Shown: positions 1 through 64,000 of the stretch, in pieces
How the letters are laid out: each line of letters begins with the position of its first letter
Numbering within the stretch: position 1 is the first letter of the stretch
Assembly: GCF_052425735.1 (NCBI RefSeq)
Contig: NC_135760.1
Coordinates: forward strand, 4,774,001 to 4,838,000
Origin: Oculina patagonica
Lineage: Eukaryota
Direction of reading: 5' to 3'
Length of the DNA stretch: 64,000 nucleotides
Position numbers and translations under genes: made by a program
Notes under the pieces: generated by a model
Told to the model about the DNA's origin: nothing
The model's input: the letters and a program-made list of their open reading frames with translations, nothing else
Databases searched by the model: none

Positions 1-324
1 GTGTCAGACTTACGTGAACACTGTATCAAAGTGTTCAGTAGGGATGGGAATTTTCTGTACAAATTTGGAAAGAATGGGAAGGGAGTCGGAGAGTTCAATT
101 ACCCTGGTTACTTGTCAGTTAACAAAGCAGGACACCTGATGGTCTGTGATACAGACAATCACAGGGTTCAGGTCTTCGAACTGAACGGAAAGTTTGTAAC
201 AAAGTTTGGAACAAAAGGGAGCGGGATAGGAGAGTTTAATAAGCCATGCTCTACAGCAGTTCTTAGTGATGGTAGGATAGTTGTGTCTGACTGGCATAAT
301 CATCGAATTCAGATACTTCAGTAG
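1..324 (+). CDS. TRIM-NHL E3 ligase paralog 1, 3' end only (NHL blades 4-6; start lies upstream of the window)
   Basis: Open frame to TAG at 322-324; co-linear with the C-termini of the 24297 and 51013 copies. AATAAA at 883-888 is conserved in the paralog flanks. Confidence 0.9.
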   Translation: MSDLREHCIKVFSRDGNFLYKFGKNGKGVGEFNYPGYLSVNKAGHLMVCDTDNHRVQVFELNGKFVTKFGTKGSGIGEFNKPCSTAVLSDGRIVVSDWHNHRIQILQ

Positions 325-3299: not shown

Positions 3300-4093
3300 T
3301 TTGATGAAAAAACTACTTTCAACTGGGAACAAGCGTACCTCATGGCACCAAGTTATACCAAAAGCACCAAACTGATCGAGTTCCAGTTTAAACTTTTGCA
3401 TAGGCGCATACCAACAAACAAGTTCCTATTTAAAATAGAAAGAAAAGAAAACGAAAATTGCACTTTTTGTCACAGTGCCTCAGAATCATTAATCTACCAT
3501 TTTTGGTCGTGTAGCGTTACATCCTCCTTTTGGAAAAGAGTGACTGACTGGCTTCAGGAAAACCTCTCGATAACAGGCGAATTCACTTTATTGAATACAA
3601 CAGCATTGGGCCTGAGGCCAGAACCTCATTCAAAATATGCGCTTCAATTGAACTATGCTTTGTTGCTAGCGCGGTATCACATATGGAAAGTCAAATTAGA
3701 GGAAACCACACCAAATTTCGCACCTTTTCTACGTCTTGTAAAATCAAGATATGTATTAGAGACAAAAGCGGGTGACACAAAAAAATGGATGCCTTTTGCA
3801 GAATGTTTATAAAGAGTTTATCTCCTGTCCCCCTGACTAAAGGACTGTTATCTTTTTAGCAAAGCTGTAAACGCTCTTGTATTCATATATAGAAACTATC
3901 TCCCCTCCCCCCTGACTGACTAACTCATTGTAATTTTTCTAATGTATTTAAACCATTGTAATTAGGATTACCTACCTTTTATTTTTGCTGTATTTTACGT
4001 GCTTTAGTGTTTGTACTGTATACGTTATTTGTTTCTTTTTTGTGTTTGCAAGTGATCAATAAAAAAAATAAAAAAAAAAATAAAATAAAAAAA
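3300..4093 (+). mobile_element. L1/Tx1-type LINE, 3' fragment (C-terminal zinc knuckle, 3'UTR, A-rich tail) in a USOMP5-like intron
   Basis: ORF 3342-3812 contains FQFKLLHRRIPTN...CTFCHSASESLIYHFWSC; A-rich tail at 4058-4093. Confidence 0.85.
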
Positions 4094-7046: not shown

Positions 7047-7089
7047 TTCTTAGAAATCTTGGCAGTCAGTCTGTAAACAATTCTTAGAA
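7047..7089. promoter_or_regulatory. Tandem GAS/STAT-type sites (TTCTTAGAA x2) with a forkhead-like GTAAACA between them
   Basis: TTCTTAGAA at 7047-7055 and 7081-7089; the same pair lies upstream of the other two TRIM 5' regions. Confidence 0.5.
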
Positions 7090-7281
7090 GTCAGACAGTG
7101 CCTCTCGTCAAACCTCTTGTGAAGCCTTTTTAGAACGAAGTCCAAGCGCTGAGATCGTGCAGAAACTCGCAATAAACACAATCATCTTTCAGAAAGGAGT
7201 CGGCGATGAACAAGAAGAAGTGGATCGGACTGTGACCTTCAAGTCCTTCGTCAATTCATTTTCGTACAAATTAAAACATTA

Positions 7282-8475
7282 ATGGAGAAAGCAGAAACTG
7301 ATAGAATCGGCTCTTTCAAAACATTCATTAGCAAAACTGAAGCTCAGCAATCAAGTGCCGAAGGAAAAGGAATCAGTGAGGCGACTGTTGGACTTGAAAC
7401 ACAGTTGGTGTTGATAACAAGAAATGCTAAAGGAGAACAATGTTACGAAGAACGTGACTCGGTAACAGTGGACATTAGAAATCAAGGCCATGACTGTACA
7501 ACGAAAGTGCGAGTCCAAGATAACAGGGATGGCACCTACAAGATCAGCTATTTTGGCAAAGAAACCGGAAAATGCGACGTATCAGTGAAGGTAAATGATG
7601 AACACATCCGCGGCAGCCCTTTTGATGTTCAAGTGAAACCCAGACAGTACAGACTCGTGTTATCTTTTGGACAATACGGTTCGTCTGCTGGAATGCTTTT
7701 TGGTCCTCGGGGGCTGGCAGTGAATGAACGCGACGAAATTGCAGTGACTGGGATTGGTAACGACAGTGTTCAGGTATTCAATAGCGATGGGACTCACTTG
7801 AGGTCGTTTGGTAGAAAAGGTGGCAGACAGGACGAACTTAACTGGCCTTTCGGCATAGCTTTTTATACAAATAGTAATATTATAGTAGCGGACACTGGTA
7901 GACACCAAATCAAAGTTTTTAGTGAGCAGGGTGAGTACCTGAACCAGTTTGGTGAACAAGGAAGTCTTGATCACCAGTTTAAGTATCCTTTTGGTTTATC
8001 CGTTGACAGCGATGGCAATATTATTGTTGCTGATTCAGATAACAAATTGATCAAGATATTTTCTCCTAGCGGCCAGTTTTTGCGTAAAATTGGTGGTAAA
8101 GGCTCTTTCACCCATCCCATTCACTGTGTCGAATATGACAAGTATCTTATAGTGTCAGACAGGGATGAACACTGTATCAAAGTGTTCAGTAGGGATGGGA
8201 ATTTTCTGTACAAATTTGGAAAGAAGGGAGAGCGAGATGGAGAGTTCAAATTCCCTTGTTACTTGTCAGTTAACGAAGCAGGACACCTGATGGTCTGTGA
8301 TTCATGCAATCACAGGGTTCAGGTTTTCGAACTGAGTGGAAAGCTTGTAACAAAGTTTGGAACAGAAGGTAGCGCGTTAGGAGAGTTTAATAATCCATGC
8401 TCTACAGCTGTTCTTAGTGATGGTAGGATAGCTGTGTCTGACACGTTTAATGATCGAATTCAGATATTTCAGTAA
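7282..8475 (+). CDS. TRIM-NHL paralog 2, N-terminally deleted (filamin domain plus 6 NHL repeats; possibly a pseudogene)
   Basis: 397-aa open frame. Upstream, promoter sequence joins directly at 7120-7122 to a frameshifted coiled-coil remnant, so ~1 kb including the start codon, RING and B-boxes is missing. Confidence 0.7.
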   Translation: MEKAETDRIGSFKTFISKTEAQQSSAEGKGISEATVGLETQLVLITRNAKGEQCYEERDSVTVDIRNQGHDCTTKVRVQDNRDGTYKISYFGKETGKCDVSVKVNDEHIRGSPFDVQVKPRQYRLVLSFGQYGSSAGMLFGPRGLAVNERDEIAVTGIGNDSVQVFNSDGTHLRSFGRKGGRQDELNWPFGIAFYTNSNIIVADTGRHQIKVFSEQGEYLNQFGEQGSLDHQFKYPFGLSVDSDGNIIVADSDNKLIKIFSPSGQFLRKIGGKGSFTHPIHCVEYDKYLIVSDRDEHCIKVFSRDGNFLYKFGKKGERDGEFKFPCYLSVNEAGHLMVCDSCNHRVQVFELSGKLVTKFGTEGSALGEFNNPCSTAVLSDGRIAVSDTFNDRIQIFQ

Positions 8476-8640: not shown

Positions 8641-11600
8641 GAGTTTCTAAAGTCCAATGGCAGGTCGATAGTACTTAAGGTGAGAATAAAAGACAAAAAT
8701 TATTTATTAGTAAATATTTATGGTCCAAATAAAGATGCAGAGGCAGTTCGATTTTATCAAAATCTGTCGGCAACATTGCGAGAAATGGATCCTGACAGTG
8801 ATGACAATATCATCATAGGCGGAGATTTCAACTGTCCTTTAAATCCAACCTTGACAAAAAGGGTGGAATACTAATTCCACGCCAACATGTGATCAATTCA
8901 ATAGAAAACATTCAAAATGAATTTAGTCTTCATGATATATGGCGTATTAAAAATCCGAACACTTGTAGCTTCACATGGAGCAAAAGCCACCCTTTCATCT
9001 TTTGCAGACTTGACTACTGGTTAATTTCAGACAAGTTAAATGACTTAGTTACGCATGTTGATATTCAAGCTTCAATAAAAACTGACCACTCGTCCATAAT
9101 ATTAGAACTAGAAGATATTAAAGATAGTCAACGGGGACCAGGTTTCTGGAAACTAAACACTTCCCTGCTGGCCAGGCCTGATTATGTTGAGATGATAAGT
9201 AAAGAATTACCCAATTGGCTGGAAGATGCAAGAGATCTGTCAGACAAGCGAGCAAAATGGGACTGGCTTAAATTTAAAATCAAAACTAGCTCAATTATTT
9301 ATTCAAAGCAGCTGTCAAAAGACCGACAGAGAAGGGAGGAAGAACTTAACGCCAGGCATCAAGACATGCTCTATAGTAAACAAAAAGTAAATCTAAACGG
9401 TGATGAAGCTAATTTCTTCTTTCAAAATCCAAATTTAAAAAGACTCTCCGAGGAATTAAGCACAAATTGTGAGGGAGAAATAACTCTTCAGGAATGCGAA
9501 AATATATTAGGCTCTTTTCACACGGGCAAAACGCCCGGGAACGATGGAATTCCAATAGAATTTTATAAAGCATTCTGGCCTTTATTAGGCAAATTTATGG
9601 TTGATTCATTTAATGAGGCTTTTTACAAAAAGGAAATGTCTCACTCACAGAAACAAGCTGTTATAACACTTATTGAAAAGAAAGGAAAAGAAAGAAACTA
9701 TCTTGAAAACTGGAGACCAATATCATTGACTAATGTAGACGCGAAAATTGCATCTAAAGTAATTGCAGCTAGAGTTATTAAAGTCCTACCGGAAATAATT
9801 CACTGCAATCAGACCGGTTATGTAAAGGGTAGGTTCATTGGCGAAGCAGCAAGATCAATTATAGATATTATGGACTATACAAAGAAGCAAAATATACCAG
9901 GTATATTACTTTTTATTGACTTCGAAAAGGCATTTGATAGCATCGATTGGGAATTCATGTTAAAGTGCTTAGACGTGTTTGGTTTTGGACCTAGTTTTAA
10001 AGGATGGGTAGAAACATTTTATAAAAATATATCTAGCTGTGTGATAAATAATGGGATGTGCACATCTTACTTCGATGTACAGAGAGGAGTCAGGCAGGGC
10101 GACCCATTATCACCATATCTCTTTATTATTGCAGCTGAAATTTTAGCTACTGCGATTCGAAGTAAAACAGAAATTCAAGGACTTAAAATAGGGCGAGAGG
10201 AATTTAAATTCGTACAATATGCTGACGACCTCACTGTGTTTGTGCCAAATCTTGATTGTGTACAACGTACCTTTCATTTGCTAGATCAATTTGAAACTTG
10301 TTCGGGTTTAAAGGTCAATTATACCAAAACTGAAGCTATGTGGATTGGCTCTTGTCGAAATAATACAGCGGCACCTTTGGGACTTAAATGGGTAAATACA
10401 GTGAAGGCACTTGGAATAGTTTTTACATATAACGAAACTGAACAATTGCAGAAAAACTTTTGTGAAAAACTAAAAGATATTAAGTTGCACACGCGGTTAT
10501 GGCGTTGCAGAGGTCTCTCACTGCTTGGAAAAGTTACAATAATTAAATCCTTTTTGCTTTCGAAGATGATATATGTATTCTCAGTTCTCCCAACTCCACA
10601 AGATTTCATCAAGCAGATTAACACTATTATATATAACTTCCTATGGAATGGGCCTGACAAAATAGCACGAGCAGCAACAATTAATGACATTAAATTTGGA
10701 GGGCTAAGGCTGATAGATGTAGAAACTTCAATTAAATCTTTAAGATTAGCCTGGCTTGGTAGAATATTTTCTGAGGGCTCTGCACCATGGAAAGCTTATA
10801 TTAATCAAATGCTTGACAGTTACGGTGGCACTTTTCTATTGAGATGTAATTATGATGTTAACGATTACAACTTTCAATGCCCTTTCTATAGCGAATTTCT
10901 CCAATGGTGGGCTGACTTTAGAAATGATTCCTCTACCAGGCCTCTTATATCTGAGCGTATAATCTGGAACAATAAGCTAATTAAAATAGATGGTAAGAGT
11001 ATATATTTTGACAATTACGTTAAAGCTGGAATCATTCTAACCAATCAGATGCAATTTAATAAGGATAACGTGGAATCATATAATAGGGCAAAAAATGAAG
11101 GGTTGAGACACACAAATTTTTTAACGTGGTCAGGGATTCGATGTGCAATTCCCACCCACTTAAAAGCCTTAGATGGAAATGAAAGTGAAATAGATTCACT
11201 AACATTTCATTTTAATGAAAAGCTACTTGACCCAGTAACTTGTAAAAGTAAGCAATTCTATGAACTGCTACTCTCAAAAAGGGCAACGGTATCGAGGGGT
11301 TTTAATAAACTTAAAGAAGATTTTGGATTAGATGATACAACTGTGTCAAAGGCTTTTCTTAATTTAAAGTCTATTTTATCGGAAACCTTTGTTAGAAGTT
11401 TTCAATTTAAACTGTTAAATGATATTACATTCACTAATACGCGGTTAGCAAAAATCGGTTATGTTCCAAATGATACTTGTACATTTTGTAAAAACGAGTC
11501 AGAAACAGTATATCATTTATTCTACCACTGCTCTTTGACACATCTCTTTTGGGAACACTTTAAAAATTCCTGGTTTGTATTAACAGGCCAACAGGAGGAA

Positions 11601-12007
11601 CTTACGCTAAAAGACGTGTTCATTGGGAAAATAGAAAAAAGTGATTTGTTGAATTATTTTTTAATTCTAGCAAAATTGCATATCTGGTTGAGTCGAAAAC
11701 ATTCAAAAATCCCAAATATTGATGTATTTAAAGAACTAGTTGATCTAAAATATAGAACTGAGAAGTATATAGCAGTAAAAAATAATATGCAGAGCAAATT
11801 TCAGACTAGATGGCATTTATATATAAGTAATAATAGCTAAATCATAAGTTCTTACGAGTAAGATAATGGTAAATAGATAAGATAGTACATAGGTATATTG
11901 TAACGGTGTCATTGGTATATATGCACCGCAAATTTATATATGAGACTGTAAAATTGTAAAATTTCTGTTTGCAAAACAATGGCAATAAATATGTGGAAAA
12001 AAAAAAA
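8641..12007 (+). mobile_element. 5'-truncated L1/Tx1-clade LINE (APE endonuclease C-terminal part, RT, zinc knuckle)
   Basis: Motifs GGDFN, RLDY, TDH, PGNDG, QGDPLSP, YADD and CTFC..ETVYHLFYHC; AATAAA at 11984 plus poly(A); 16-bp TSD ATCTTGAAGTTTGTTT at 8625-8640 and 12008-12023; 1-nt frameshift at ~8853. Confidence 0.95.
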
Positions 12008-14699: not shown

Positions 14700-16143
14700 A
14701 GACACGATGTGGCATTGTTGAAGCTGAACAGGGCCCTGAGATACAACAACAGAGAGTGAGACCAGTCTGTCTTTCAGAATCAAACTTTCCTTCTCTTAAA
14801 ATCTGTTTCGTTACTGGATGGGGAACAAACGAGAAGAGTAAACAAAATCAATCCCAGGTATGTACCTCTGCTAATTCAGGAAAGAAAACAATGTGTTAGT
14901 TGTATTACAGGCCCATACACACTGTAATGAGCGCCAAGGACAGCGGAGAAGAAAAAGCCGAGGCAATTATTTGTATGTACGTGTATGTACTTAGGCGCTT
15001 AAATTCTCGGTTTGTTATTAACTATCAGCAGTTTGTGTTTTGTACCACAAATCCCTTGTATTCAGTTTTCATTTCTTACTGCAATGCCTTCAGAAAGCAG
15101 GAGCAGATCTCTTTACATAGCTTGTCGCATGATTTGTAACTGAATTCGCTGGAGCTGAGCTCTCATTCAGGTTATCCTGGGCCGGAGAAGGGTCGGAGAA
15201 CGCTCTCCGCGACTTGCATAGCTCACCGATAGGGGGATAGGGGGAGCAGGGATGGCACAGTGGCGAGAGCGCTCGCCTCCCACCAATGTGGCCCGGGTTC
15301 GATTCCCGGACTCGGCGTCATATGTGGGTTGAGTTTGTTGTTGGTTCTCGTCCTTGCTCCGAGGGTTTTTCTCCGGGTTCTCCGGTTTCCTCCCTCCACA
15401 AAAACCAACACTTCCAAATTCCAATTCGATCGGGAATACACGGCCCCACAAGCTTATAGCTTTAAACCTCACCGTGTCTTAATAAAGGTAATTTATTTAT
15501 TTATTTATTTACCGATTCCCTCTCTCCTTTCTCAATGCAACATGTTTCCATTTCTTTCCTAGCATAAGAATAAATACAATTAAACTTTACTTAATCATGG
15601 TTAAAACGCCAGTTAAAAAATGATACAAAATGATACGTGTTTGCCGTGTGGGTGCCCGTTGAGGCGTTGAAGTCATTGATTCCCTTTCAAAACCTTGCTA
15701 TGGTTAATGGCTTACGTAGATTAGACGGCAGTTCATTCCAAACAACAGCCCCAGATTAAACAAAACTGTGATTAAGATAATTAGTTCTTGGTTTAGGTAC
15801 TTGAAAAATGTTCTCAGAGTTGCGGATACTGTAGAAGCTTGCGAGCGGAGAACAGATCTTGCATGTATGGGGGCGTTAAATTGCATATTCGTGTAGGGCA
15901 TGACGCGATACTAATGTTTATATTGTTGAACTCCCCCTTGTCCCACGTGGCACTTGTCAGAGAAGCAATAACTTGAGGGGTTTTGGATTCTGCGTCACAA
16001 CTAGCAAACCGCATGCGCTGTGCAGGTTACGCTCAAAGCGGAATTGACGCATGTCCAGTTGATAGTGGAGGACCTCTGGTATGTGAGAGGAACAGCAAGT
16101 GGCATCTAATGGGCGTGGCCAGCTGGGGTGCTGGGTGTGCTCT
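14700..16143 (+). pseudogene. Trypsin-like protease pseudogene (remnants of the second and third catalytic exons)
   Basis: [10 protein letters not shown]...VCL...CFVTGWG at 14700-14857 and [23 protein letters not shown]...WGAGCA at 15930-16143; frameshifted and truncated. Confidence 0.85.
15240..15510 (+). mobile_element. tRNA-derived SINE with V-domain-like core and (ATTT)n tail
   Basis: A box TGGCACAGTGG, B box GGTTCGATTCC; near-identical copy at 57927-58190. Confidence 0.85.
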
Positions 16144-18089
16144 GTAGTAACTTTAGGCTAGTAGTACTATTGAAGTTTTGATTGGGTTAACTGCAAATCA
16201 AAGCTGTCGAGAATTCTTAAATCAAACAAAGCTTTGATAGTTCAGTTTCAGTATGAGTCAGTTTTGGACAACTTAGTAGTGAAATCAATTATGTATTATT
16301 ACAAAGGAGCTATTATTGTCCAATAGATAGGATCTTGCCCGTTTCGTTTTTGCCATAAATGTTTACTACATTGTACAATTAATAAAACTTGTTTAATAAC
16401 TTTGCTACTGAACCGACAATACAACAAGCTATTTTCCACTTTGTCCCCAGGGTCCTCTCGGTAGTAGGCGAAATGTTGGGGAAGACCCAGGGACTTGGCT
16501 TGACTACCCCTTCATAAAAATGGGCTCAAAACATAAAAGTTATACTCCCGAAATTCCTTCAAAGATGCCAAGGCACATCAACTTACTTTTTGATTTTCCG
16601 TTCGAGCTACGTGAACGGTAATCCGTTGCCTGAATATTGCGAATTTGAAAATGTTTACTATGTGTTTTATACAACAACATGCATGGCCGCGACCTTGGAA
16701 ATAGATCGATTCTGTATGTTTTAAGTGGCTTAGGGTTTTGGTACTGCTTGCAGCTGTTGTATTTCAAAATTTTCCCAGTTGCTATATTTATACTATGGCA
16801 CCTCTAAAGGGTTCACGAAAACAGGAATTAGTTGTCAAGAAATAAAATTGACATTTAATTGACCTCTTTTGTTTGCTAGGACGTGGATTAATTATGGCCT
16901 GTTAAGTTTTTGGAATTTGCAACTTAAGAGTTTGAAACCCACATGAGAGCTACACCTCAAAAAATTATTTCTATAGGTTTAAAGGGCTTACTAAATTTTA
17001 TATGATGGGATTTAGTAGATTTAGTAGACATAAATTTTTTAATTTCTAGAAGATACAGGGCCGCTGTGAGCAAGAGACCGTTTGACCTTTCTCGCAGCTT
17101 AAAAGCTAGCTCCCGCGTATCGTATGTCCTTTATCGCAGGTCACGCTATAATATAACGTAATCTTTGTTGAGTCAACATAGGGAAATCTAAAAAAATATA
17201 TATAAAATAAAATATTACTGTTGTACAATTGAGTAACTGTGATCTACGAAGAAAATGTATTTTTAACTTTGCATCCTTGAGCTGTGAATTCATAACTACT
17301 GTATTTATTTGAATTCCATCAGATCTTAAGTATTCTTTTTATACAATCACTAACATTGCTTGTTAGGTTTAAAAAAATGTAAGCTGCAGTTGGATAACAG
17401 TCTTAAAAGACCCCTTGTGAAACGTCATCGCTTCTGCATGTATTACATGCCGTTTATTTTTTAATGGCAGTTTCTTCTCAATATATGGCGAGGTTGTAGT
17501 CCAAAGCTTGACCGTGGCGCAAAAATTAGTAATTTTCTGCTCTTGGATTCTACCCAGTCTTTGCGCGCTCTTTCATTGGCGAGCACAAAGCACGAGAAAG
17601 ATCCTGGGAGGGAGTGATTCCCCGCCTCTGTTCGCAAAATTTTGACGTCACGGGCTACACGAAAATGACGTTGGTTACTAGGCCGCAACCTTGAAAAAGA
17701 AGCCATTTTTTTTTTTTTCCGAGGGGGGTGGGAGGTCTTTCTAGGGACTGGAATCTTAACTCCTGACCCTTGGCATTCTCAACTTAATTTAATAAATTTG
17801 TATTTAGCACATACTATACTGGGCACACCAAATCTGTCTGCATGTATAAATACTGTTTTACATTTAATTTTTGTAGCGTTGTGTTGTACACACAAAAGTG
17901 ATTGACCAGGGTTTTTTTTTTTTGGAAACACTTAAAATACTGTGGGAGAATTTGATAGTGTTTATATAAATGTTGCGTTTCAATTTTTACCCTTCGTAAA
18001 ATCTGGTATTTCCTTTTTTTTTACCATTTTTTTTTTATTTTTTACCATTTACCAGAACAAAGGAAAACACCAAATGATGCCAAAGGTAA

Positions 18090-18264
18090 AATAGACCATA
18101 TTCGTATTCTCGGTATTGAACTGGAACTAGCTTGCAATGGAGGCTAATGCGGGAATCATTTCAAATGCAAATGACATGAAGCTCTTTTTAATGATATTTC
18201 CTCGCATCAGCCCCCATTGTAAGCTAGTTCCAGTCTTATACCGAGAATACGAATATGGTCTATT
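18090..18264. mobile_element. Palindromic MITE
   Basis: AATAGACCATATTCGTATTCTCGGTAT / ATACCGAGAATACGAATATGGTCTATT; copy at 60776-60952. Confidence 0.8.
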
Positions 18265-18652
18265 GAACCATAACATTAAACCTCGCCTATGACTCACTCG
18301 GATTTAAATAAACTTTAAAAACTCGTTAAAAATTTTCGTGTTAAAATCCGAACCGTGACGATGGTTTTTTGGCTATGTGATCCTAATTAGCATATATTTT
18401 TACGATTTTATTCCGTTTTTTTTTTCTCGTAGTTTTAGTTTTGAATAAGAAGTACTATCTGATAAATGAGGGCGAGTGTTTCATCACATCTCCAAACACC
18501 TAAACAAATACTCCGCTGGGCATCGTATTTTCAATTCTCTAGCTTCTCGGTGTTGTGAAATTCGATGCAGAGTTTCATTTCATACTTCCAACAGGTTATT
18601 TAGAAAACGACGGCCATTGTTTATTTCTAAAATATGTTATTTTCACACTCAG

Positions 18653-21161
18653 ACAGTTCACAAGGGCCAAATAAGTGTGACACTGCATTCCAGTCCCACA
18701 AGAACAAAGTCACTGTAAGCTGGTTAATCAACGTCGGATTGCTGACACCTGATACCTACAAGGAGATATGCTTTGGAAAAGTCTTCAAGGGAATACCATT
18801 CACAATCCTGTGCTGGAACAAAGTAACAAACGCCTTTGCCTTTTCAAAATGCGATGGATCGTTATCCACGTGGTGTAAGACCAATGTCAAGAATCCCAGA
18901 GCAAGGAAACCCCGTGATGGTTCTATCATTGTGTCAGTGGAGATGAACATGAAAGGCAATTTTGGCCAGTTGGTATACTGGGAGATACTCTGGGCTGGCA
19001 TACACAACAGGGTTATTGATGAGATGCTCTACTGCACCTATAGAGTTGGTATGTAGTATTGTTATGATAACGCATAACAGTGTTCTCGAGACTGAAATTA
19101 TCAAAAAATGACAAAAAACGAAATTATTGTTTTTAAAAACTTCTTTTCTCCAGTTTTAATACCGAGGGCTCCTGTTCAACAAACAGTCTATGAGCCTGAG
19201 TTTCTATGAGTCAATAGGCGCAGCCGAGTTGATCTTATTATAGGAATACAGTATAACAAAGAATTTTAACAACGCGAACAAAATCTACGCGTTATAAAAT
19301 GTACGCCAATTTTCGAAAAGTTATTTTTACTTGCATAAAATTAACACAAACGGAACCGGCGCGTGTCTCCTGATGCTTGCAAAGATTACTGATGTTTTAC
19401 GAATCCCATAGAATTTCTTACAGCAAAAAGATACAAAAGATACGAAGCAGTTTTGTACGTACCAAAGAGAAACTATCAAAAGTGCTATTTGACTCATTTC
19501 AAAATTTGTTATTTGATTTTCTTCTCTTCCATAGAAAGTTTTGATTGTGGTAAAAAGCCACCCCGTTCTAGGATATATGGGGGCACCAACACTCGTCCAG
19601 GGGCGTGGCCCTGGCAAGTGTCATTAAAACATCGATACAAGGCACATCTGTGTGGAGGATCAGTGATTGGTCCACAGTGGATCTTAACAGCGGCTCACTG
19701 CTTTGATGGCTTTAATCCAAACGATTTCACCATTATTGCAGGTAATCCTAATTGACTTTTTCACTAAAAAAGGGTCACTACAAAGAAACTGGTAGCACTG
19801 TTGCGAAGGCTTACAGCTCTGTTATTTAAACACTTCTTAAGTCCCGGCTAAACGATTAAATATTTTCATCTTACTTCGAGCTGCAACGACATCGTTTAAC
19901 GTTCACTGGGCTGGCTTACTTCCAATCAAACAATGGTCACAATTTGTTCCTTACGCGAAATGCTAGTCTATAAGTTTGAGTTATTAACGAGCAAACATAT
20001 TTCACCCAGAACGACGTTTAATTGTTTAGTTCACTAGGAAACTCATTCCAAATAAAAGCGAAAGTTTTTCAAGTTAGCTGGACAATTTTTTCCAGCTGTT
20101 TTAAACACTCACAGGCCCATTTCTTAAGCAATAAAAACAAGTTTGATTGTATTTTAATTTCATTTTTTAATTGCTTTATTTATTCAAACCAGGGGAGCAT
20201 CATCTCTTGACAGTAGATGGTTTCGAGCAAGAGGTTGCCATCGAAAAGCTCTTCATACATCCTCGGTATAACATGACCTGTAGGTACAACAACGATGTGG
20301 CGTTGTTGAAGCTGAACAGGACTCTGAAATTCAACAACAGAGTAGGACCAGTCTGTCTTCCAGACTCGGAGTTTGCATCTGGCTCCATCTGTCACATCAC
20401 TGGGTGGGGGACAAATGGCAACAGCGGTAAAAGGCGTCCAAAGGTACATAAGATTAATAATTGGGCTAACTTAAGTATGCCGAGGAGCGCTAAAAAGAGC
20501 CTTGTTAGAGAAAGTTTTCAACAAATGACTTTTCGACTTTCTCATTTATCTTATAACGGAGGGAATTTCCTAGCGGTCCTTCATTCTAAAACACAACTTT
20601 TACTACCCTTCTGGATACTAAATGCAAGCTTTTGATACTCTGTTAAAGACCACAATAACTTTTACTAACCTTAACCCATCCTCCCTTCCCTATATAAAAA
20701 TGACAACGGTCATCCTTTTCCCTACCCCGATGATTTAGGACAACAATTCACAATTATTCCTACAAACCTACACTACAAAAACTCACCATGCGGGCTCGGA
20801 AGTCACTAATAATTTGCGAAAACTAATCTTCATGAAACTATTTCGCCTTATTTATCAGACCTTGAAGCAAGCTAAACTTCCTCTTGTGTCACGTGACACT
20901 TGCAAGAGAAGCTACAAGGACTACCGGTCTTCTGGCTACTGCGTCACAAAACGCATGCGCTGTGCAGGGTACGCTAGAGGTGGTGTTGACGCCTGTAGAG
21001 GTGATAGCGGAGGACCGCTGGTCTGTCAGCGGAACAGGAAGTGGCATGTCATGGGCGTGGTCAGTTGGGGTGCCGGGTGCGGACAAAGGGGACGCTATGG
21101 AGTCTATGCTGATGTGTTGCAGCTCAAGCAATGGATACAAGAAACGATACAAGATTCATGA
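18653..21161 (+). CDS. Trypsin-like S1A serine protease A; exons 18653-19048 (accessory domain), 19535-19741, 20193-20443, 20859-21161; first (signal) exon not identified
   Basis: GT-AG sites with consistent phases 1/1/0; activation site R|IYGG; triad motifs [14 protein letters not shown] and GDSGGPL; S1-pocket Asp (VDAC). Confidence 0.85.
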
Positions 21162-23388: not shown

Positions 23389-24108
23389 TAGGACGTGGAT
23401 TTTGGCTTTCGCGCATTGGCCAAGAATTTGAAATTTGCATCTCATAGATTCTACGCAAATAATTCAGGACGTAACAAATCCATCGAAATCGAGCATCGGA
23501 AAGCTAATCGATTTATCGATACTACTCGAAAGTGATCGATGCTTGTCGATTGATAAGTTAATTTATACGCCAATCAGAATTCAGGAAAGACGTTGTATAT
23601 TCGACGGTATATTTTCAACTCAACCTTCCCATCGTGCGCTGCGATCTTATCATCTCGACGAAATTTATATATAAAAAAAGTTACACAACACTTTCTCGTG
23701 GTATACTATGGAATACAAGTGACTCGTAGGATATTCCACAGTATACCACTCGAAAGCGTTGCATAACTAGTATTTAATCGATCGAAATCGATAATAACAA
23801 AATTCCGACTTAAATGGTTAACATAACATCGATTAAAAGAAATGAAACACTATAACTCAAGCAGCTCAAGCAACTTTAAAACTTACCTTTAAAGCTGAGA
23901 TAACTACTCTTCTCTCTAGTCGTCTATTTTCCTACTAAATTTTTCAATATTTTTCCTCCAGGGCCTCTACAGACAAGACTATGTTGAAAATGTTTAGCTG
24001 GTTGACCACGCATCACCTGTTTCGATATGATTTACTGACGCTGATTATGCAGATTATGTGTTTTGCAATCTTTTCTAAGCTGCAAAGGTCACGCTATTTT
24101 GGTCACAA

Positions 24109-24151
24109 TTCTTAGAAATCTTGGCAATCAGTCTGTAAACAATTCTTAGAA
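24109..24151. promoter_or_regulatory. Tandem GAS/STAT-type sites upstream of TRIM-NHL paralog 3
   Basis: TTCTTAGAA at 24109-24117 and 24143-24151; palindromic ATTGGCCAAT at ~24179; the sites lie ~150-190 bp before the ATG. Confidence 0.55.
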
Positions 24152-24296
24152 GTTAGACAGCATGACAAACCTCTTGTGATTGGCCAATGATATCAGTGGT
24201 CAACAGTATGATAAATACGGTATTTGATCACAAGACTTCATTGTTAGCTGCGGAGGCGTTTTAAACTCCAAAGCTTCGTTGTTGTCCGCCTTTATC

Positions 24297-26552
24297 ATGG
24301 ATATACAAACCTTGCTAAACAATCTTCATGAAGAAGTATCCTGTCCTGTGTGTATGACAACGTTCACGGAACCAAAGCAGCTGCCCTGTTTACATAGTTT
24401 TTGTCTTCATTGCTTGGAAGGAATTCAACGAACGAGCGGACGCCGTGATATCATAGCATGCCCAGAATGCAGGAGAGAGATTAGACTCCCCACAAGTGGA
24501 AATCTTAACGATCTACCCACTAACTTTCGAATCAACAGTTTGCTGGATGTGTTGGCTATCAGAGAGTGCAGTACAGATGGCGTCAAATGCGGAAATTGCG
24601 ACAAAAAAAGCGCACAGAGCTCATACTGTTTCCAGTGCCTTGGATTCTGGTGTAGTCATTGTATTACAGCTCATAACATAATCCGCACTAACAGAGAGCA
24701 TAAACTGCTAGCGCTTAAAGACTTTCAAGATCAAGACATCGATGAGGTGTTAAAGCGACCAGCATTTTGTCCAAGGCCAGGCCACGAAAAGAAAGAATTG
24801 GAATTCTTTTGTGAAAAATGCGAAGTTCCCATTTGCAACGCCTGTGCTCTGACAAGTCATGAAGGTCACGCCAAGAAACTCTTGGAAGAAGCTGCAAATG
24901 AACGAAAGTTACAAATCAATTCTATGATTGAATTGCAAAAGGAAAAAGTGCAACAGAAGAGAAACAGAATCGCCAAACTTGACGAAAACTGCGTTCAGAT
25001 TGAAGCAAAGGCCGCTGCCGCGAAGCAAAACGTAAACAGGTTTGTTGAAAATCTGACGGCAGTTATCGAAGCGAAGAGGAGGGAAATATTAAACAAAGTG
25101 GAAATTCAAATGAAGGAATCTGTCGAGCGTCTGCGAACTCAACAATGCAAGGAAGACAATCAAGTGAAACTGATCGAGACAGAAATCGCGAAAACTAAAA
25201 CGCTTTTAAAGCGAGGTCCAAGCGCTGAGATTGTACAACTAGATAAACTCGCAATAAACACAATCTTTCAAGAAGGAGTCGGCGATGAAGGAGACGAAGT
25301 CTACTGTGACGTTGAAGACCTTTGTCAATTCATTTTCGTACAAAATGAAACATTAATGGAGAAAGCAATCACTGAAGGAATCGGCTCATTCAAAACATTC
25401 CTCAGCAAGACTGAAGCGCAGCAATCGAGCGCCGAAGGAAAAGAAATCAGTGAAGCAACTGTTGGACTTGAAGCAAACTTTGTTTTGACGACAAGAAATG
25501 CTGAAGGAGAACAATGTTACGAAGAGCGTGACTCGGTAACAGTGGACATTAGAAATCATCAAGGCCATGACTGTGCGACGAAAGCGCGAGTCCAAGATAA
25601 CAAGGATGGCAGCTACAATATCAGCTATTTTGCCAACGAAACTGGAAAATGCGACGTATCAGTGAAGGTAAATGATGAACACATCCGCGGTAGCCCTTAC
25701 AATGTTCAAGTGAAACCCAGACAGTACAGAACCGTGTTGTCTTTTGGAGAATACGGTTCGTCTGCTGGAATGCTTTGCTATCCTTGGGAGCTGGCAGTGA
25801 ATGAACGCAATGAAATCGCAGTTGCTGAGACTAGTAACCACAGGGTTTCAGTTTTTAGTAGTGATGGGACTCACTTACGATCGTTCGGTAGAAAGGGTGA
25901 TAAACAGGGAGAGTTCAAATTCCCTTGCGGCGTGGCTTTTGATAAGAATAGTAATATTATAGTAGCGGACAGGAATAACCACCGAGTCCAAGTTTTTAGT
26001 GAGCAGGGTGAGTACCTGAACCAGTTTGGTGGCCAAGGAAGTCTTGATCACCAGCTTATGTATCCTCATGGTTTATCTGTTGACAGTGACGGAAATGTTA
26101 TTGTTGCTGATTCAAATAACAAACTAATCAAGATATTTTCTCCTAGCGGTCAGTTTTTTCGTAAAATTGGCGGTGAAGGCTCTTTCACCTATCCCTATCA
26201 CTGTGTCGAATATGACAAGTATCTTATAGTGTCAGACAATCATGAACACTGTATCAAAGTGTTCAGTAGGGATGGGAATTTTCTGTACAAATTTGGAAAG
26301 AAGGGGGAGGGAGAAGGGGAATTCAATGACCCTGGTTACTTGTCAGTTAACAAGGCAGGACACCTGATGGTCTGTGATTCATACAATCACAGGGTTCAGG
26401 TTGTCGAACTGAGTGGAAAGATTGTAACAAAGTTTGGAACAAAAGGGAGCGGGATAGGAGAGTTTAATCAGCCATTCTCTACAGTAGTTCTTAGTGATGG
26501 TAGAATAGTTGTGTCTGACTTTCGTAATCATCGAATTCAGATGTTTCAGTAG
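24297..26552 (+). CDS. Intronless TRIM-NHL E3 ligase (TRIM71/TRIM2/3-like): RING, 2 B-boxes, coiled coil, filamin, 6 NHL; 751 aa
   Basis: RING CPVC..LPCLHSFCLHCL..CPEC; B-box Cys/His motifs; filamin DNKDGSY..HIRGSPY; NHL repeats F..P.G...D..NHR(V/I)Q; ATG in ATCATGG context. Confidence 0.95.
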   Translation: MDIQTLLNNLHEEVSCPVCMTTFTEPKQLPCLHSFCLHCLEGIQRTSGRRDIIACPECRREIRLPTSGNLNDLPTNFRINSLLDVLAIRECSTDGVKCGNCDKKSAQSSYCFQCLGFWCSHCITAHNIIRTNREHKLLALKDFQDQDIDEVLKRPAFCPRPGHEKKELEFFCEKCEVPICNACALTSHEGHAKKLLEEAANERKLQINSMIELQKEKVQQKRNRIAKLDENCVQIEAKAAAAKQNVNRFVENLTAVIEAKRREILNKVEIQMKESVERLRTQQCKEDNQVKLIETEIAKTKTLLKRGPSAEIVQLDKLAINTIFQEGVGDEGDEVYCDVEDLCQFIFVQNETLMEKAITEGIGSFKTFLSKTEAQQSSAEGKEISEATVGLEANFVLTTRNAEGEQCYEERDSVTVDIRNHQGHDCATKARVQDNKDGSYNISYFANETGKCDVSVKVNDEHIRGSPYNVQVKPRQYRTVLSFGEYGSSAGMLCYPWELAVNERNEIAVAETSNHRVSVFSSDGTHLRSFGRKGDKQGEFKFPCGVAFDKNSNIIVADRNNHRVQVFSEQGEYLNQFGGQGSLDHQLMYPHGLSVDSDGNVIVADSNNKLIKIFSPSGQFFRKIGGEGSFTYPYHCVEYDKYLIVSDNHEHCIKVFSRDGNFLYKFGKKGEGEGEFNDPGYLSVNKAGHLMVCDSYNHRVQVVELSGKIVTKFGTKGSGIGEFNQPFSTVVLSDGRIVVSDFRNHRIQMFQ

Positions 26553-28429
26553 CTTTGATATCAACTAACCTGTGACCTAATTAGTGAAACGATTTTGAAC
26601 TACTTGTCAACTTGTACCGTCGTTTTGGGGGACTATGTCTGTCTATAGTAAGTTACAAATTTGGAATGAAAGCTGCCAACCAAAATTTCTTTTTTAAGTG
26701 TGAGAGATTTAAGACAGAAAACTGAGATCTTTTAAATTTAAATGCCAGGGGGCTATAAACAATGTATTACCTAATTGTAGTAGATTAATTACTTGTCACC
26801 GAGGTAATCTGTTTTGAACTCGTAAGCCGAACGGTTGTAAATATCAGTTTACTAAAACTACTTAAAATTTTTTAAGGAATTTATATTGAAGTTTATTTAG
26901 CAAATATTGTTTCCTTGGATTTTCTGTAAATAAATAGTGAAACACGCTTTCCCTAAAATTAAGTAAATTTTTGTAAATTTAGCTACCAACAACTATTCTT
27001 AACTGTAGCCAGTTTAGATCACTTGTCATAGAAATAACTACACATTGTAACCTGTATTTTGATCTGTACCTTTTAAAACAAATTTTCAAAACATAAATTT
27101 GTTGTAAATAAGTAGTATTATATTTTGTGACATAAATAATCTGCGTGACATTTACTGATCATGACTTACGAAAACCTGATCAATACATCCTTGTAAGATG
27201 CGAAAAGGTAATGAAATGTGAATAAAATGAAGTTTTTTCCAGAGTTTAAACTGGTGACCATGTCATTATTGGGAGCAGTTTGTAGGGGCGTGATATGATT
27301 ACTTTTTAATTGGTTTGAAACAGAAGCTTATCACCTAGCGAGATGATAAGCTCTTGATTTGAAATGATATCATGTACTGGATTGTACTGGATATAACCTG
27401 AGTATACTAGAGTCAATAAGCTATTAACAAGGTTGGATATTGTTTTTCAAAAATTCATTCAATTTCCTAAAATCGAAATGGAAATTATTAGATGATTGAT
27501 TTTCAGAAATTTGTTTTTAAATTTGAATATTTATTGCTGCAGTGTGCTCTAAGCAAAAAGTGAGTGACGCATTTGATCGAGTGGAAACGTTGCCAGTAAA
27601 CAAATTTTCCCCACCACTTTAATCTCGAGAGAGATCATTCTCGATCCCAGGGCTTTTCCCTTGAGATTAAAAACTTGAATGACCAAGGTGTGTTAATTTT
27701 TGGCCAGTTTCGGGGTACCTCCGGATCTAATTCGTTATTCGTCGGTTGATACGAAATCCCGGAAAATCCCGTACCATTTGCTGTGTGCCATCACCTAGAG
27801 TATTATTCAAATTTTGCCTAAACTGAAATTAAGAATAAGGCCAAAAAAAATTAAATATTATCTTACTAGGTTATTACAGTTAGTTTTATAGAATGAGATA
27901 AGAGGGCTTCTTTACTTATCATGAAATCGCAAATCATGAGTAAAATGTCCTTCTACTCGCTTGAACTGCTTGTCAAAGCCAGCGCGTGTCACGTTGGCCG
28001 ATCGATAGGCATTGTGGGATGTTTCCTCTCCCACTGGCTGCCAATTATAAATAGAATTGAGTTCAAAATAATTTTTATTAGTTTTTGGATTCTTTCAGAT
28101 CAGTGGTCGATCTAGGGGAGGAGTCCGGGGGGTCCGGGTCCTCATTTTATTTTTAGGTCAAACTGAGGTCCGAATGGCCGGAGGAAATGATTTTCGAGTG
28201 TGCCCCCCTTATTTCAGGGTCTGGATAATCGCCCTCCCCCACATTAATCAATCCTGGCGTGACAGTGAAAACCAGTAATACCAAAACATCCCAAACCTTT
28301 ATTATTAATCACAAATTCAAGGTATCGGTGTTACCAATACAGAAATTATAAGCACTATGCCCGCTTGTAGTAAATAAAGTTATTTTAAAGTTCTTATTTC
28401 CCATTGTCTCCGTGCAGTGTAACAGAAGA

Positions 28430-38777: not shown

Positions 38778-39899
38778 CTAAATGCCGACAACTGCGATGG
38801 CATAAGCATTTCTTCCCTGCGGTAATTCCAAATAGCTTTCCCATCTGTTTAGTTCAAAATCAAAGGCGTAAGCGGTATTTTCACCGCCATCAGCTCCAAA
38901 AACAACCATCATGTTTTGCACAATTTCAGCCCGGCACAAGGAATATCCCACGGGTATGGGAGGCAAATCAAGCCAAACATGGCCTTCCAAATCGAACGCT
39001 TCAACGTCCAAGACATCGGTCCCATTCTTATCGCACCCTCCGACGACAATCAGTTTTTTCTTCCACGCCACGGCTGTGCAACCGTAACGTTTTCGCCTCA
39101 TGGGAGGCAATTTTGTCCATTTTCCTTGCTCCCCGTCGAAAATTTCGGCAGAGTTCTTTGCGCTGTTGAAGTAGAAGCCAGAACCACCCCCGGCTACCAG
39201 CAGTTTGCGCCCGATGATTCTCCCTCCAAAGTTGCAACGAGGTTCCAGCATCGGTGGCAGTGTAAACCATTCTTTCTTCTTTACGTTGTATAGCTCGACG
39301 CTGTTAAGCACACTGCCTTGATCGCAGCCTCCAGCCACTAGAATTCCGTGCTCTGTTCCCGAGGCAAAACAGCCCCATCGCCGTTTTCTCATGTGCTTGA
39401 GTACCTGCCACTCGCCGGTCACCCAGTCGTACATCTGCACGGTGTTCAGCGCCTTCCATCCACCAAACCCGCCAACTACAACGAGCGCGGGAACACCTGT
39501 GACTGCTGTAGCATAGCATGCTGTGGTTTTCACTGGCAAAGGAGCGATTTGTCGCCATTCTTCATTCGTGCAGTCGTACACTTCGACAGTCGAAGTGGGT
39601 TCGCTTCCCTGCCCTTCAGCCGCCCCTCCAATGGCGAATATGTGCTCATGTAACTCGATGATGTCATATTCGCGATCGAAGTCAATTTCCTTTATACCGG
39701 ATCTGGTCTCTTCCGTGTCCAATGTATCGACGTAGGCAGCTGTGTCTCGCAGAAATTTCGCTTGAAACCTTTTTTGTAGTTCTGTAGGAATAGCGATCAC
39801 CGAGTCAAATTTTTCTCGAAGTTTCTCTCGCGCCTTCGCGAAATCAAACTCATCATATTTTGGTTTCTTCTTCTCGAATAACTCTGTTTCGAGGAAAAT
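38778..39899 (-). CDS. Kelch-repeat (6-blade) protein, terminal exon of 373 codons; upstream exons not found in the window
   Basis: Acceptor CCATAG| at 39900-39901; open frame IFLETELFEKKKPKYDEF...; GG doublets and Y/F-D...W Kelch motifs; TAG at 38778. Confidence 0.85.
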   Translation of the reverse strand: MFLETELFEKKKPKYDEFDFAKAREKLREKFDSVIAIPTELQKRFQAKFLRDTAAYVDTLDTEETRSGIKEIDFDREYDIIELHEHIFAIGGAAEGQGSEPTSTVEVYDCTNEEWRQIAPLPVKTTACYATAVTGVPALVVVGGFGGWKALNTVQMYDWVTGEWQVLKHMRKRRWGCFASGTEHGILVAGGCDQGSVLNSVELYNVKKKEWFTLPPMLEPRCNFGGRIIGRKLLVAGGGSGFYFNSAKNSAEIFDGEQGKWTKLPPMRRKRYGCTAVAWKKKLIVVGGCDKNGTDVLDVEAFDLEGHVWLDLPPIPVGYSLCRAEIVQNMMVVFGADGGENTAYAFDFELNRWESYLELPQGRNAYAIAVVGI

Positions 39900-63715: not shown

Positions 63716-64000
63716 TGAAGAATCAAAATTGATTGTGGATAAATGATTTATTCGCCTTCCTTGTTATTTTCATTACAGTACTAGTTATTAAACCCAACCT
63801 AAATTGTAAAATTGTTTCTAAAATGTGGTCACGACCATCTCAATATTAGTTGTCCTCGTTTTTGTTCTCTGTATACTTCACAGGATTCCAATTTAATTTT
63901 ATGTACCTCACTTCGGTGTTTTTTTATGTCTACCTGCGATTTTGTTTTTTCGTTCTCCGCCTTTTAGCTTCGGCGCCATTTGCGTATACAGTAGAACCCC

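Follow-up and report, generated by a model that had tools for sequence, protein, structure and literature searches.

In textbook accounts, TRIM-NHL proteins exemplify conserved developmental regulators encoded by few gene copies, and rapidly evolving TRIM proteins have hitherto been regarded as a vertebrate phenomenon of the B30.2/SPRY type. In TRIM5alpha and TRIM22 of primates, and in the finTRIM and btr proteins of teleosts, a conserved RING/B-box/coiled-coil part precedes a C-terminal B30.2/PRY-SPRY recognition domain with positively selected surface loops, and the genes lie in tandem clusters with turnover (PMC2657112; PMC3845644). The known TRIM-NHL members are developmental regulators whose genes are single-copy and evolve slowly, and TRIM71/LIN-41, TRIM2, TRIM3 and Thin/TRIM32 have in common RING, B-boxes, coiled coil, Filamin and six NHL repeats, in this order. 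In corals, NHL-repeat and B-box orthogroups are reported to be expanded in merulinids, and both an NHL-domain gene and a TRIM71-like group show a whole-gene Ka/Ks above 1 in Acropora and Montipora (PMC11639872; PMC7783167; PMC9145168); these are entries in lists from genome-wide screens, which do not deal with site-level selection, mapping to a propeller face, a constant E3 joined to a variable face, or the promoter. Our literature search found no description, in cnidarians or any other invertebrates, of selection on individual sites of NHL faces, although papers outside the search may exist. Here, we describe a family that has the domain order of the TRIM-NHL proteins but, unlike its known members, comprises dozens of tandemly arranged, intronless copies that are under positive selection.

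A tandem TRIM-NHL family in Oculina patagonica

The stretch of Oculina patagonica DNA analyzed (64 kb; hereafter, the window) carries four intronless copies of a RING/B-box/coiled-coil/Filamin/NHL gene. Two are intact; of the other two, one is represented by its 3' end only and one lacks the RING, the B-boxes and the coiled coil, or most of it. The copies and the domains of the third are as follows:

1..324, + strand: paralog 1, last 107 codons and stop, from the end of blade 4 to blade 6
7121..8475, + strand: paralog 2, without RING, B-boxes and most of the coiled coil
24297..26552, + strand: paralog 3, intact intronless CDS, 751 aa
~24342-24470, + strand: RING of paralog 3
~24588-24869, + strand: B-boxes 1 and 2 of paralog 3
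~24894-25391, + strand: putative coiled coil of paralog 3
~25410-25703, + strand: Filamin domain of paralog 3
25720-26549, + strand: NHL propeller of paralog 3
51013..53268, + strand: paralog 4, intact intronless CDS, 751 aa

The whole gene of paralog 1 (locus L003) extends beyond the start of the window, and is a probable pseudogene because it has one in-frame TAA. Paralog 2 keeps an intact Filamin plus NHL ORF of 397 aa (7282-8475); a non-LTR reverse-transcriptase ORF is found downstream of it (8889-11840). The ORF of paralog 3 spans 24279-26552, with the true ATG at 24297, and its product is 88-89% identical to that of paralog 4; a segmental duplication with a period of ~26.7 kb runs across the window. 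A search of the genome returned at least 61 matches (578 first-look candidates), arranged in tandem clusters on contigs C3, C11 and C14, and nine of the 30 best loci (~30%) are broken or truncated. The clusters, the broken loci and the segmental duplication mark the genes as a tandem multigene family subject to birth and death.

By its domain content the family is TRIM class VII (TRIM-NHL, subfamily C of PMC3503706), lineage-expanded and tandemly duplicated in this scleractinian coral, with predicted E3 ligase activity. Pfam places zf-RING_UBOX and zf-C3HC4 at the N-terminus, as in class VII, followed by zf-B_box (E 2.4e-9) and by the Filamin (E 3e-20) and NHL (E 1e-41) domains of the class VII C-terminus; B30.2/PRY-SPRY was absent from the Pfam matches, and neither a signal peptide nor a transmembrane segment was found in the paralog ORFs. 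The RING zinc ligands (C16, C19, C31, H33, C36, C39, C55 and C58) are kept in 20-21 of 21 paralogs, the 16 ligands of two B-box Cys/His clusters (aa 98-135 and 158-191) are conserved, and all 24 are retained in 20-21 of the 21 full genes. A putative coiled-coil region of ~170 aa (aa ~200-370) evolves with an omega of 0.5 and without positive selection. An AlphaFold model of the NHL domain (pLDDT 95.9, pTM 0.92) has six four-stranded blades and finds its best Foldseek matches in the NHL domains of Thin, TRIM71, TRIM3 and TRIM2; identity to those of TRIM71/LIN-41, TRIM2, TRIM3 and Thin/TRIM32 is 37-40% and TM 0.93-0.94, the superpositions on Thin and TRIM71/LIN-41 (also TM 0.93-0.94) having an rmsd of 1.3-1.7 A. 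Since the recognition domain is an NHL beta-propeller preceded by Filamin, and not SPRY, this cnidarian family is to be seen as an analogue of the TRIM5/finTRIM repertoire and not as a member of it, in spite of the conserved RBCC part, selected surface loops and tandem clusters with turnover that they have in common.

Positive selection restricted to the NHL propeller

The initial annotation had singled out positions 25720-26552 as an NHL region hypervariable at the same positions of each blade. This is the propeller of the third TRIM-NHL copy, and the residues listed were found exactly in the four copies: HPI/YPY/FPF and SD-LR/RD/NH/NH in blade 4, YPG/FPC/DPG/YPR and D-TD/SC/SY/SD in blade 5, and KPC/NPC/QPF/KPH and SD-WH/TF/FR/WF in blade 6. 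Nucleotide divergence is 0.346 in the D+1/D+2 codon pair, compared with 0.075 for the five codons to either side of it. Across 35 genome paralogs, the variation is focused on five positions in each blade, three around a conserved Pro (P-2, P-1 and P+1) and two after a conserved Asp (D+1 and D+2); among 116 database homologs, these motif positions make up 25 of the 30 NHL columns with the highest variability (p 4e-26). Face signatures are distinct in 34 of the 35 paralogs, with a median difference of 23 of 30 residues, and the same face residues reappear by homoplasy in closely related paralogs. In two very young pairs (dS ~0.08), the faces have not diverged.

Site models were fitted to the 35 paralogs with our own GY94-F3x4 implementation, whose M0 lnL is identical to that of IQ-TREE, with branch lengths fixed up to one scale factor. 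Neutrality was rejected (2dlnL 256 for M1a/M2a, 305 for M7/M8 and 208 for M8a/M8) in favor of a class with omega 3.1-3.7 comprising 6-7% of the codons, although recombination is evident among the paralogs and may inflate such tests, an effect that the tree-free and sub-alignment tests given below offset only partly. A dN/dS>1 class, for which an M7/M8 comparison had been proposed as the check, is thus present. An M8 posterior above 0.95, our definition of a selected codon (n=18), was reached by 17 of the 30 motif codons defined a priori and by one of the 252 others (Fisher p 3e-18), so that 17 of the 18 fall on the same positions of the blades, as had been claimed. In paralog 3, their first bases are:

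25752..26525, + strand: selected codons at 25752, 25776, 25779, 25971, 25974, 26061, 26067, 26112, 26115, 26190, 26238, 26328, 26379, 26382, 26469, 26475, 26520 and 26523

The signal was also obtained from the local seven-gene clade alone (2dlnL 86.5, omega 13) and from half-domains, each with its own tree (2dlnL 71 and 191). A tree-free comparison of 13 sister pairs gave a dN(motif)/dS of 1.35-5.2 in 11 of them, whereas dN/dS in the non-motif part of the NHL domain of the same pairs was 0.18-0.63 (motif versus remaining domain: Fisher odds ratio 5.1, p 8e-25). Region by region, in the 21 full genes, 2dlnL was 0 for RING/B-box, 0 for the coiled coil, 11.6 for Filamin and 222 for NHL. The RING and B-boxes, described as constant in the initial annotation, are under purifying selection (dN/dS 0.05-0.24; region-wise omega 0.09-0.2) with their zinc ligands kept, and the dN/dS>1 class is confined to NHL. 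Selection in surface loops of the C-terminal domain next to a conserved RBCC part is the pattern of repertoires of the TRIM5/finTRIM type.

Exchange among the paralogs has left traces elsewhere in the gene. A GENECONV-like test of run length finds, in 40 of 210 pairs, shared tracts exceeding those of all 200 permutations; most lie in the B-box and coiled-coil region. This result is suggestive of gene conversion, with the reservation that regional rate differences confound the test; RING and NHL give discordant dS values.

Ligand face, RNA contacts and promoter

In the model, the selected sites fall in the D-A and B-C loops, predicted to lie on the same propeller face, an assignment based on strand topology, superposition on TRIM71 and published contacts; this agrees with the clustering on one face that had been expected. 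The equivalence with the RNA-binding positions of LIN-41/TRIM71 was likewise upheld, as all 14 RNA contacts of DrLIN41/HsTRIM71 (taken from PMC5908797) align to motif positions; that is, the positions by which LIN-41 contacts RNA are those that vary in the coral family. The basic pocket of TRIM71 (Hs R608, R625, R655, K672, R720, R751, R796 and R814) is, however, not kept in the 35 paralogs, which retain 0-3 of the eight basic contacts as R/K (none in 14 paralogs, one in 13, two in seven and three in one). The face is near neutral (net charge -3 to +4) and rich in aromatic residues. Since a basic pocket of the LIN-41 type is not conserved, RNA binding by the coral NHL domains cannot be assumed.

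The promoter is conserved across clades and contains paired STAT-like (GAS-like) TTCNNNGAA palindromes. At least two GAS-like sites are present in 14 of 21 genes, as compared with a background of 0.24 per 350 nt. In the window, the elements are:

7047..7089, + strand: GAS-like pair directly upstream of the truncated paralog 2, TTCTTAGAA, 25 nt, TTCTTAGAA (0 matches in 100 shuffles)
24109..24217, + strand: promoter of paralog 3, with GAS-like palindromes at 24109-24117 and 24143-24151, ATTGGCCAAT at 24179-24188 and ATAAATA at 24211-24217
50828..50868, + strand: GAS-like pair upstream of the paralog 4 ATG (-185 and -153)

These sites are matches to a consensus, at which STAT binding is predicted; the paired TTCNNNGAA sites may make transcription inducible by STAT, and a STAT/interferon-type promoter logic is possibly common to the coral family and the finTRIM/TRIM5-type genes. 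Two polyA single-end runs labelled O. patagonica gave zero reads over 23900-26800. In two further runs, which may or may not be RNA, short contigs of at least 97% identity cover the ORF only, and may stem from cross-mapping of paralogs.

Constant E3 part, variable face and possible ligands

We consider it fairly probable that, in this tandem TRIM-NHL family, a conserved E3 part is joined to a diversifying ligand face with an immune or non-self role. Each paralog combines a constant, predicted catalytic and oligomerization part with ~20-30 residues of its own on the upper face of the propeller, where the ligand is predicted to bind. In every blade, these residues occupy the B-C loop and the D-A loop directly preceding strand A, and diversifying selection pushes them apart. 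The repertoire would be maintained by birth and death of genes, by conversion of their N-terminal half and, possibly, by exchange of face residues in short tracts. Each paralog may bind a different intracellular ligand and then ubiquitinate it or signal from it, and the ligands would probably be fast-evolving non-self, either RNA or protein, from viruses, transposons, pathogens or symbionts. The receptor repertoire with a constant E3 proposed in the initial annotation thus stands as regards selection, its location on one face and the constancy of RING and B-boxes; pathogen or non-self ligands we infer from the analogy with TRIM5/finTRIM, from gene turnover and from the STAT-like promoter motif.

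Alternatively, the paralogs could serve many endogenous targets, as substrate-specific E3s or as mRNA regulators of particular cell types or stages. All characterized TRIM-NHL proteins act on host mRNAs or proteins (PMC5908797; PMC3503706), LIN-41, Brat and TRIM2/3/32 being the canonical precedents, and purifying selection on the scaffold, the RING and the promoter is in line with such a role. One-off subfunctionalization, however, should lead to later purifying selection, whereas the youngest clade still shows an omega of 3-13, nearly all faces are unique, broken or truncated copies make up ~30% of the best loci and face residues are homoplastic. Since an arms race or balancing selection fits these four features better, we regard endogenous targets as unlikely.

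Far less likely is a repertoire for colony allorecognition or gamete compatibility rather than for defense against pathogens. Tandem arrays under diversifying selection are typical of allorecognition and reproductive genes too, and histocompatibility exists in corals, but the cnidarian allorecognition genes known so far code for surface proteins, whereas these are RING E3s of a cytoplasmic class, devoid of signal peptide and transmembrane segment. Moreover, the variation described here is between paralogs.

That the loops are merely unconstrained (omega ~1), with gene conversion homogenizing the remainder so that the patches only appear hypervariable, is scarcely credible. The mosaicism that it invokes is present, as are the discordant RING and NHL dS values, but relaxed constraint is rejected by M8a/M8, in which omega is fixed at 1 under M8a, and dN at the face is 1.35- to 5-fold above the dS of the immediately flanking codons; in addition, neutral loops of two to three codons within conversion tracts would be homogenized along with their flanks. 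A local mutational process at the face codons (targeted hypermutation or multi-nucleotide mutation), to which the excess of two- to three-base changes among differing codons (43% at the face, 16% elsewhere), i.e., the swapped codon pairs of the initial annotation, could point, is rejected, as the synonymous difference rate of same-residue codons is normal there (0.096, versus 0.101 elsewhere), single-base nonsynonymous differences are likewise in excess, and neither template repeats nor a diversity-generating element is evident.

To return to the reading as a constant E3 with a diversifying, probably non-self-directed face, a broader version of it is tentative: a germline repertoire of tens to hundreds of unique-face intracellular TRIM-NHL receptors in stony corals, based on a propeller fold that binds RNA in other proteins, shaped by selection and short-tract exchange and expressed from a STAT-responsive promoter, might sense viral, transposon, pathogen or symbiont molecules, as an independent, pre-bilaterian counterpart of the TRIM5/finTRIM strategy. 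If the coral NHL face is a diversifying module, the 'constant E3, variable receptor' design would have evolved independently, on another fold, in an early-branching animal. The family would then provide candidate intracellular receptors for research on coral immunology and symbiosis, with the specificity residues pinpointed to five per blade at the positions of the TRIM71 RNA contacts.

TRIM-NHL copies in the window and in the genome

A tblastn search with a 757-aa ORF as query identified four copies of one gene in the window, which is drawn from a 529-Mb assembly. RING, B-box, Filamin and NHL repeats were detected in the TRIM-NHL ORF (Pfam), and the NHL domain of copy 3 occupies positions 25720-26552.

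TRIM-NHL copies
1-321, forward strand: copy 1, last 107 codons only; the complete gene is locus L003
7121-8475, forward strand: copy 2, all parts up to the end of the coiled coil missing; 397-aa Filamin and NHL ORF intact
24279-26552, forward strand: copy 3, intact, intronless; real ATG at 24297, 18 nt inside the ORF
50995-53268, forward strand: copy 4, intact, intronless; real ATG at 51013, 18 nt inside the ORF

The whole copy 1 gene contains one in-frame TAA. In the genome, at least 61 family matches were found among 578 first-look candidates, with tandem clusters on contigs C3 (that of the window), C11 and C14; the best 30 loci comprise 21 intact full-length genes and nine broken or truncated ones. 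Further copies were added to these best loci to give 35 paralogs (at least 59% identity, intact NHL, 282 aligned codons, gap-free at the relevant positions).

Variability and selection on the propeller

The initial annotation had described an NHL domain hypervariable at equivalent positions of successive blades, and each of the residue strings that it quoted is present in copies 1-4. We chose a priori 30 motif (face) codons, five per blade: P-2, P-1 and P+1 around the conserved Pro, and D+1 and D+2 after the conserved Asp. Variability among the 35 paralogs is six-fold periodic, with 6-13 different residues per column at these positions and the remainder almost invariant. When NHL columns are ranked by entropy in a set of 116 database homologs, several of which belong to other coral species, motif positions account for 25 of the top 30 (hypergeometric p 4e-26), and these positions show an enrichment of Trp, Tyr, Asn and Thr. 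The swapping of whole codon pairs is likewise real: 2-3 base changes are found in 43% of differing motif codons versus 16% elsewhere, and the D+1/D+2 pair is 4.6-fold more diverged than flanking codons. The 30-residue signature is unique in 34 of the 35 paralogs (median, 23 differences).

Site models were fitted with a self-written GY94-F3x4 implementation with pruning, branch lengths being taken from the M0 tree apart from a single scale factor; its M0 likelihood (-13103.8999) matches that of IQ-TREE exactly. A site class with omega above 1, named beforehand as a test, was found in the 35 paralogs' NHL domain (M1a vs M2a, 2dlnL 256, omega2 3.7 at 6.3% of sites; M7 vs M8, 2dlnL 305, omega 3.1 at 7.4% of sites; M8a vs M8, 2dlnL 208). 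The posterior exceeded 0.95 at 18 codons, 17 of which are motif positions (Fisher p 3e-18); the remaining one is in the long D-A loop entering blade 1. Because the paralogs recombine (see below), sub-clade, half-domain and tree-free controls were added. The local seven-gene clade alone gave 2dlnL 86.5 (omega 13), and the half-domains, with separate trees, 71 and 191. In the tree-free test (Nei-Gojobori, 13 independent sister pairs, the 30 positions chosen by motif and not by variability), dN(motif)/dS was 1.35-5.2 in 11 of the 13 pairs, against 0.18-0.63 for the NHL outside the motif (Fisher odds ratio 5.1, p 8e-25 for motif versus rest). Local hypermutation of the face codons is ruled out, since synonymous differences among same-residue codons of sisters are as frequent at motif as at other codons (0.096 versus 0.101). 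We regard diversifying selection on the ligand face as highly likely.

Two young pairs (L010/L014 and L038/L040, dS about 0.08) show almost no face divergence, whereas L001/L004 and L002/L003, at similar dS, differ at 17-19 of the 30 face codons; either face divergence is episodic, or conversion has reset the scaffold dS in some pairs.

The ligand face and the conserved putative ligase part

An AlphaFold model of the NHL domain, from the 35-paralog alignment (pLDDT 95.9, pTM 0.92), has six four-stranded blades, in which the D-A loop finishes with P-2 and P-1, strand A begins at the Pro and D+1/D+2 make up the B-C loop; from propeller topology, both modelled loops open onto one face. Superposition of the model on the NHL domains of Thin, TRIM71 and zebrafish LIN-41 gives TM 0.93-0.94 and rmsd 1.3-1.7 A. 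A gap-free HMMER alignment to human TRIM71, read with the published contact list (Kumari et al., 2018; PMC5908797), places 14 of 14 RNA-contacting residues exactly on motif positions.

RNA contacts of TRIM71/LIN-41 at motif positions
Blade 1: P-2, P-1, D+1, D+2 (C607, R608, R625, S626)
Blade 2: P-1, D+1, D+2 (R655, K672, D673)
Blade 3: P-1, P+1, D+2 (Y702, W704, R720)
Blade 4: P+1, D+1 (R751, F766)
Blade 5: P-1, D+2 (R796, R814)

The RNA-contact surface is termed the 'upper surface' in PMC5908797 and lies on the side opposite the Filamin domain. With these contacts and the shared-face loops, the claim that the variable residues line the ligand face holds for the model; clustering of the selected sites on one face, also named beforehand as a test, was found as judged by topology, superposition and published contacts.

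The basic pocket of LIN-41 is absent, Arg or Lys occupying 0-3 of its eight basic contact positions in the 35 paralogs, and functional LIN-41 orthology is rejected for this reason. Net charge over the 30 face positions is -3 to +4, and aromatics are frequent (mean 6.7/30). The ligands may be RNA, through Brat-like base recognition, or proteins.

Region-wise M1a vs M2a comparison (21 full-length genes, separate tree per region)
RING/B-box: 2dlnL 0; 78% of sites at omega 0.09
Coiled coil: 2dlnL 0; about half of sites neutral
Filamin: 2dlnL 11.6; two sites
NHL: 2dlnL 222; 13 sites

The eight RING and 16 B-box zinc ligands are all kept in 20-21 of the 21 genes, and the predicted ligase part is, as proposed, conserved. 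The Filamin codons with M2a posterior above 0.95 lie at about 25476 and 25533 of the window (residues 394 and 413 in the protein of 751 aa).

Synonymous divergence is mosaic: 0.03 in RING/B-box and 0.31 in NHL for L006 versus L008, and 0.89 and 0.37 for L001 versus L006. Runs of shared polymorphic sites exceed all 200 permutations in 40 of 210 pairs, with the longest tracts in the B-box/coiled coil, and are suggestive of gene conversion, regional rate differences being a confounder of the permutation test. Among the four closest paralogs (L001-L004), 11 of 14 quartet-informative nucleotide sites lie in face codons and back all three conflicting groupings; among them is a shared codon difference of two bases (AGG/ACT in blade 2, D+1). 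In the local clade, 266 of 465 site pairs show four-gamete incompatibility. These conflicts reflect either parallel selection (homoplasy) or exchange of face codons in short tracts.

Promoter, neighbourhood and known systems

Upstream of the ATG, a stretch of about 230 nt is kept even across clades with coding dS of 0.4-0.9. This block holds a pair of TTCNNNGAA palindromes with a spacing of about 32 nt, a ATTGGCCAAT box and ATAAATA.

24109-24217, forward strand: conserved core promoter of copy 3, seen upstream of 19 of 21 paralog loci

At least two such palindromes occur within 350 nt in 14 of 21 paralogs (background 0.24); the half-sites are kept and the central triplets vary in some clades. 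Within the window the exact pair has just two occurrences, one ahead of copy 3 and the other immediately ahead of truncated copy 2 (0 of 100 shuffles). The palindromes match the GAS/STAT consensus, which is a vertebrate one, and are putative STAT sites. PolyA tag runs gave no reads on the copy 3 locus; in two further runs, of guessed type, coverage is confined to the ORF.

The RING, the B-boxes and the larger part of the coiled coil are missing from copy 2. The family promoter is retained, its paired GAS-like sites (7047-7089) lying about 190 nt upstream of the 397-aa ORF, and dN/dS of copy 2 against sister L005 is 0.33 in the scaffold and 2.29 in face codons. Rather than being a dead gene, copy 2 may encode a head-less NHL protein that is functional, as a decoy or competitor.

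The TRIM genes and a trypsin-like gene lie within the same segmental duplication, of period about 26.7 kb. One part of this flank (15175-18627 against 57862-61314) is 97.6% identical, above the 92.3% of the TRIM genes themselves.

Neighbouring features
3342-3812, forward strand: zf-RVT fragment
8889-11840, forward strand: non-LTR retrotransposon reverse-transcriptase ORF, 983 aa, directly after truncated copy 2
19453-21158, forward strand, duplicated at about 61843-63972: trypsin-like serine protease gene, three exons (Pfam Trypsin, profile positions 1-56, 55-152, 137-220)
38778-39800, reverse strand: Kelch ORF, 340 aa, five or six repeats (Pfam Kelch_1, E 7e-50), between TRIM copies; apparently one exon of a Kelch-propeller gene

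Domain architecture and modelled fold place the genes in the TRIM-NHL class, nearest to the TRIM2/3/71 and Thin group. In coral genome papers, NHL and B-box orthogroups are described as expanded, and an NHL gene and a TRIM71-like group as having whole-gene Ka/Ks above 1 (PMC11639872, PMC7783167, PMC9145168); our full-text literature search found no site-level or structural account of selection on the NHL face. The original observation of a hypervariable NHL face beside constant RING and B-boxes is, overall, confirmed. As in TRIM5alpha/TRIM22 and fish finTRIMs (PMC3845644, PMC2657112), a conserved RBCC part and tandem birth-and-death evolution accompany a recognition domain with surface loops under positive selection; this domain is an NHL propeller in the coral but B30.2 in those families. 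By analogy, non-self (immune) recognition as the driver of face diversity is close to an even call; we lean towards the fuller explanation, a coral TRIM-NHL family that would join a conserved ligase to a diversified face with presumed non-self ligands.
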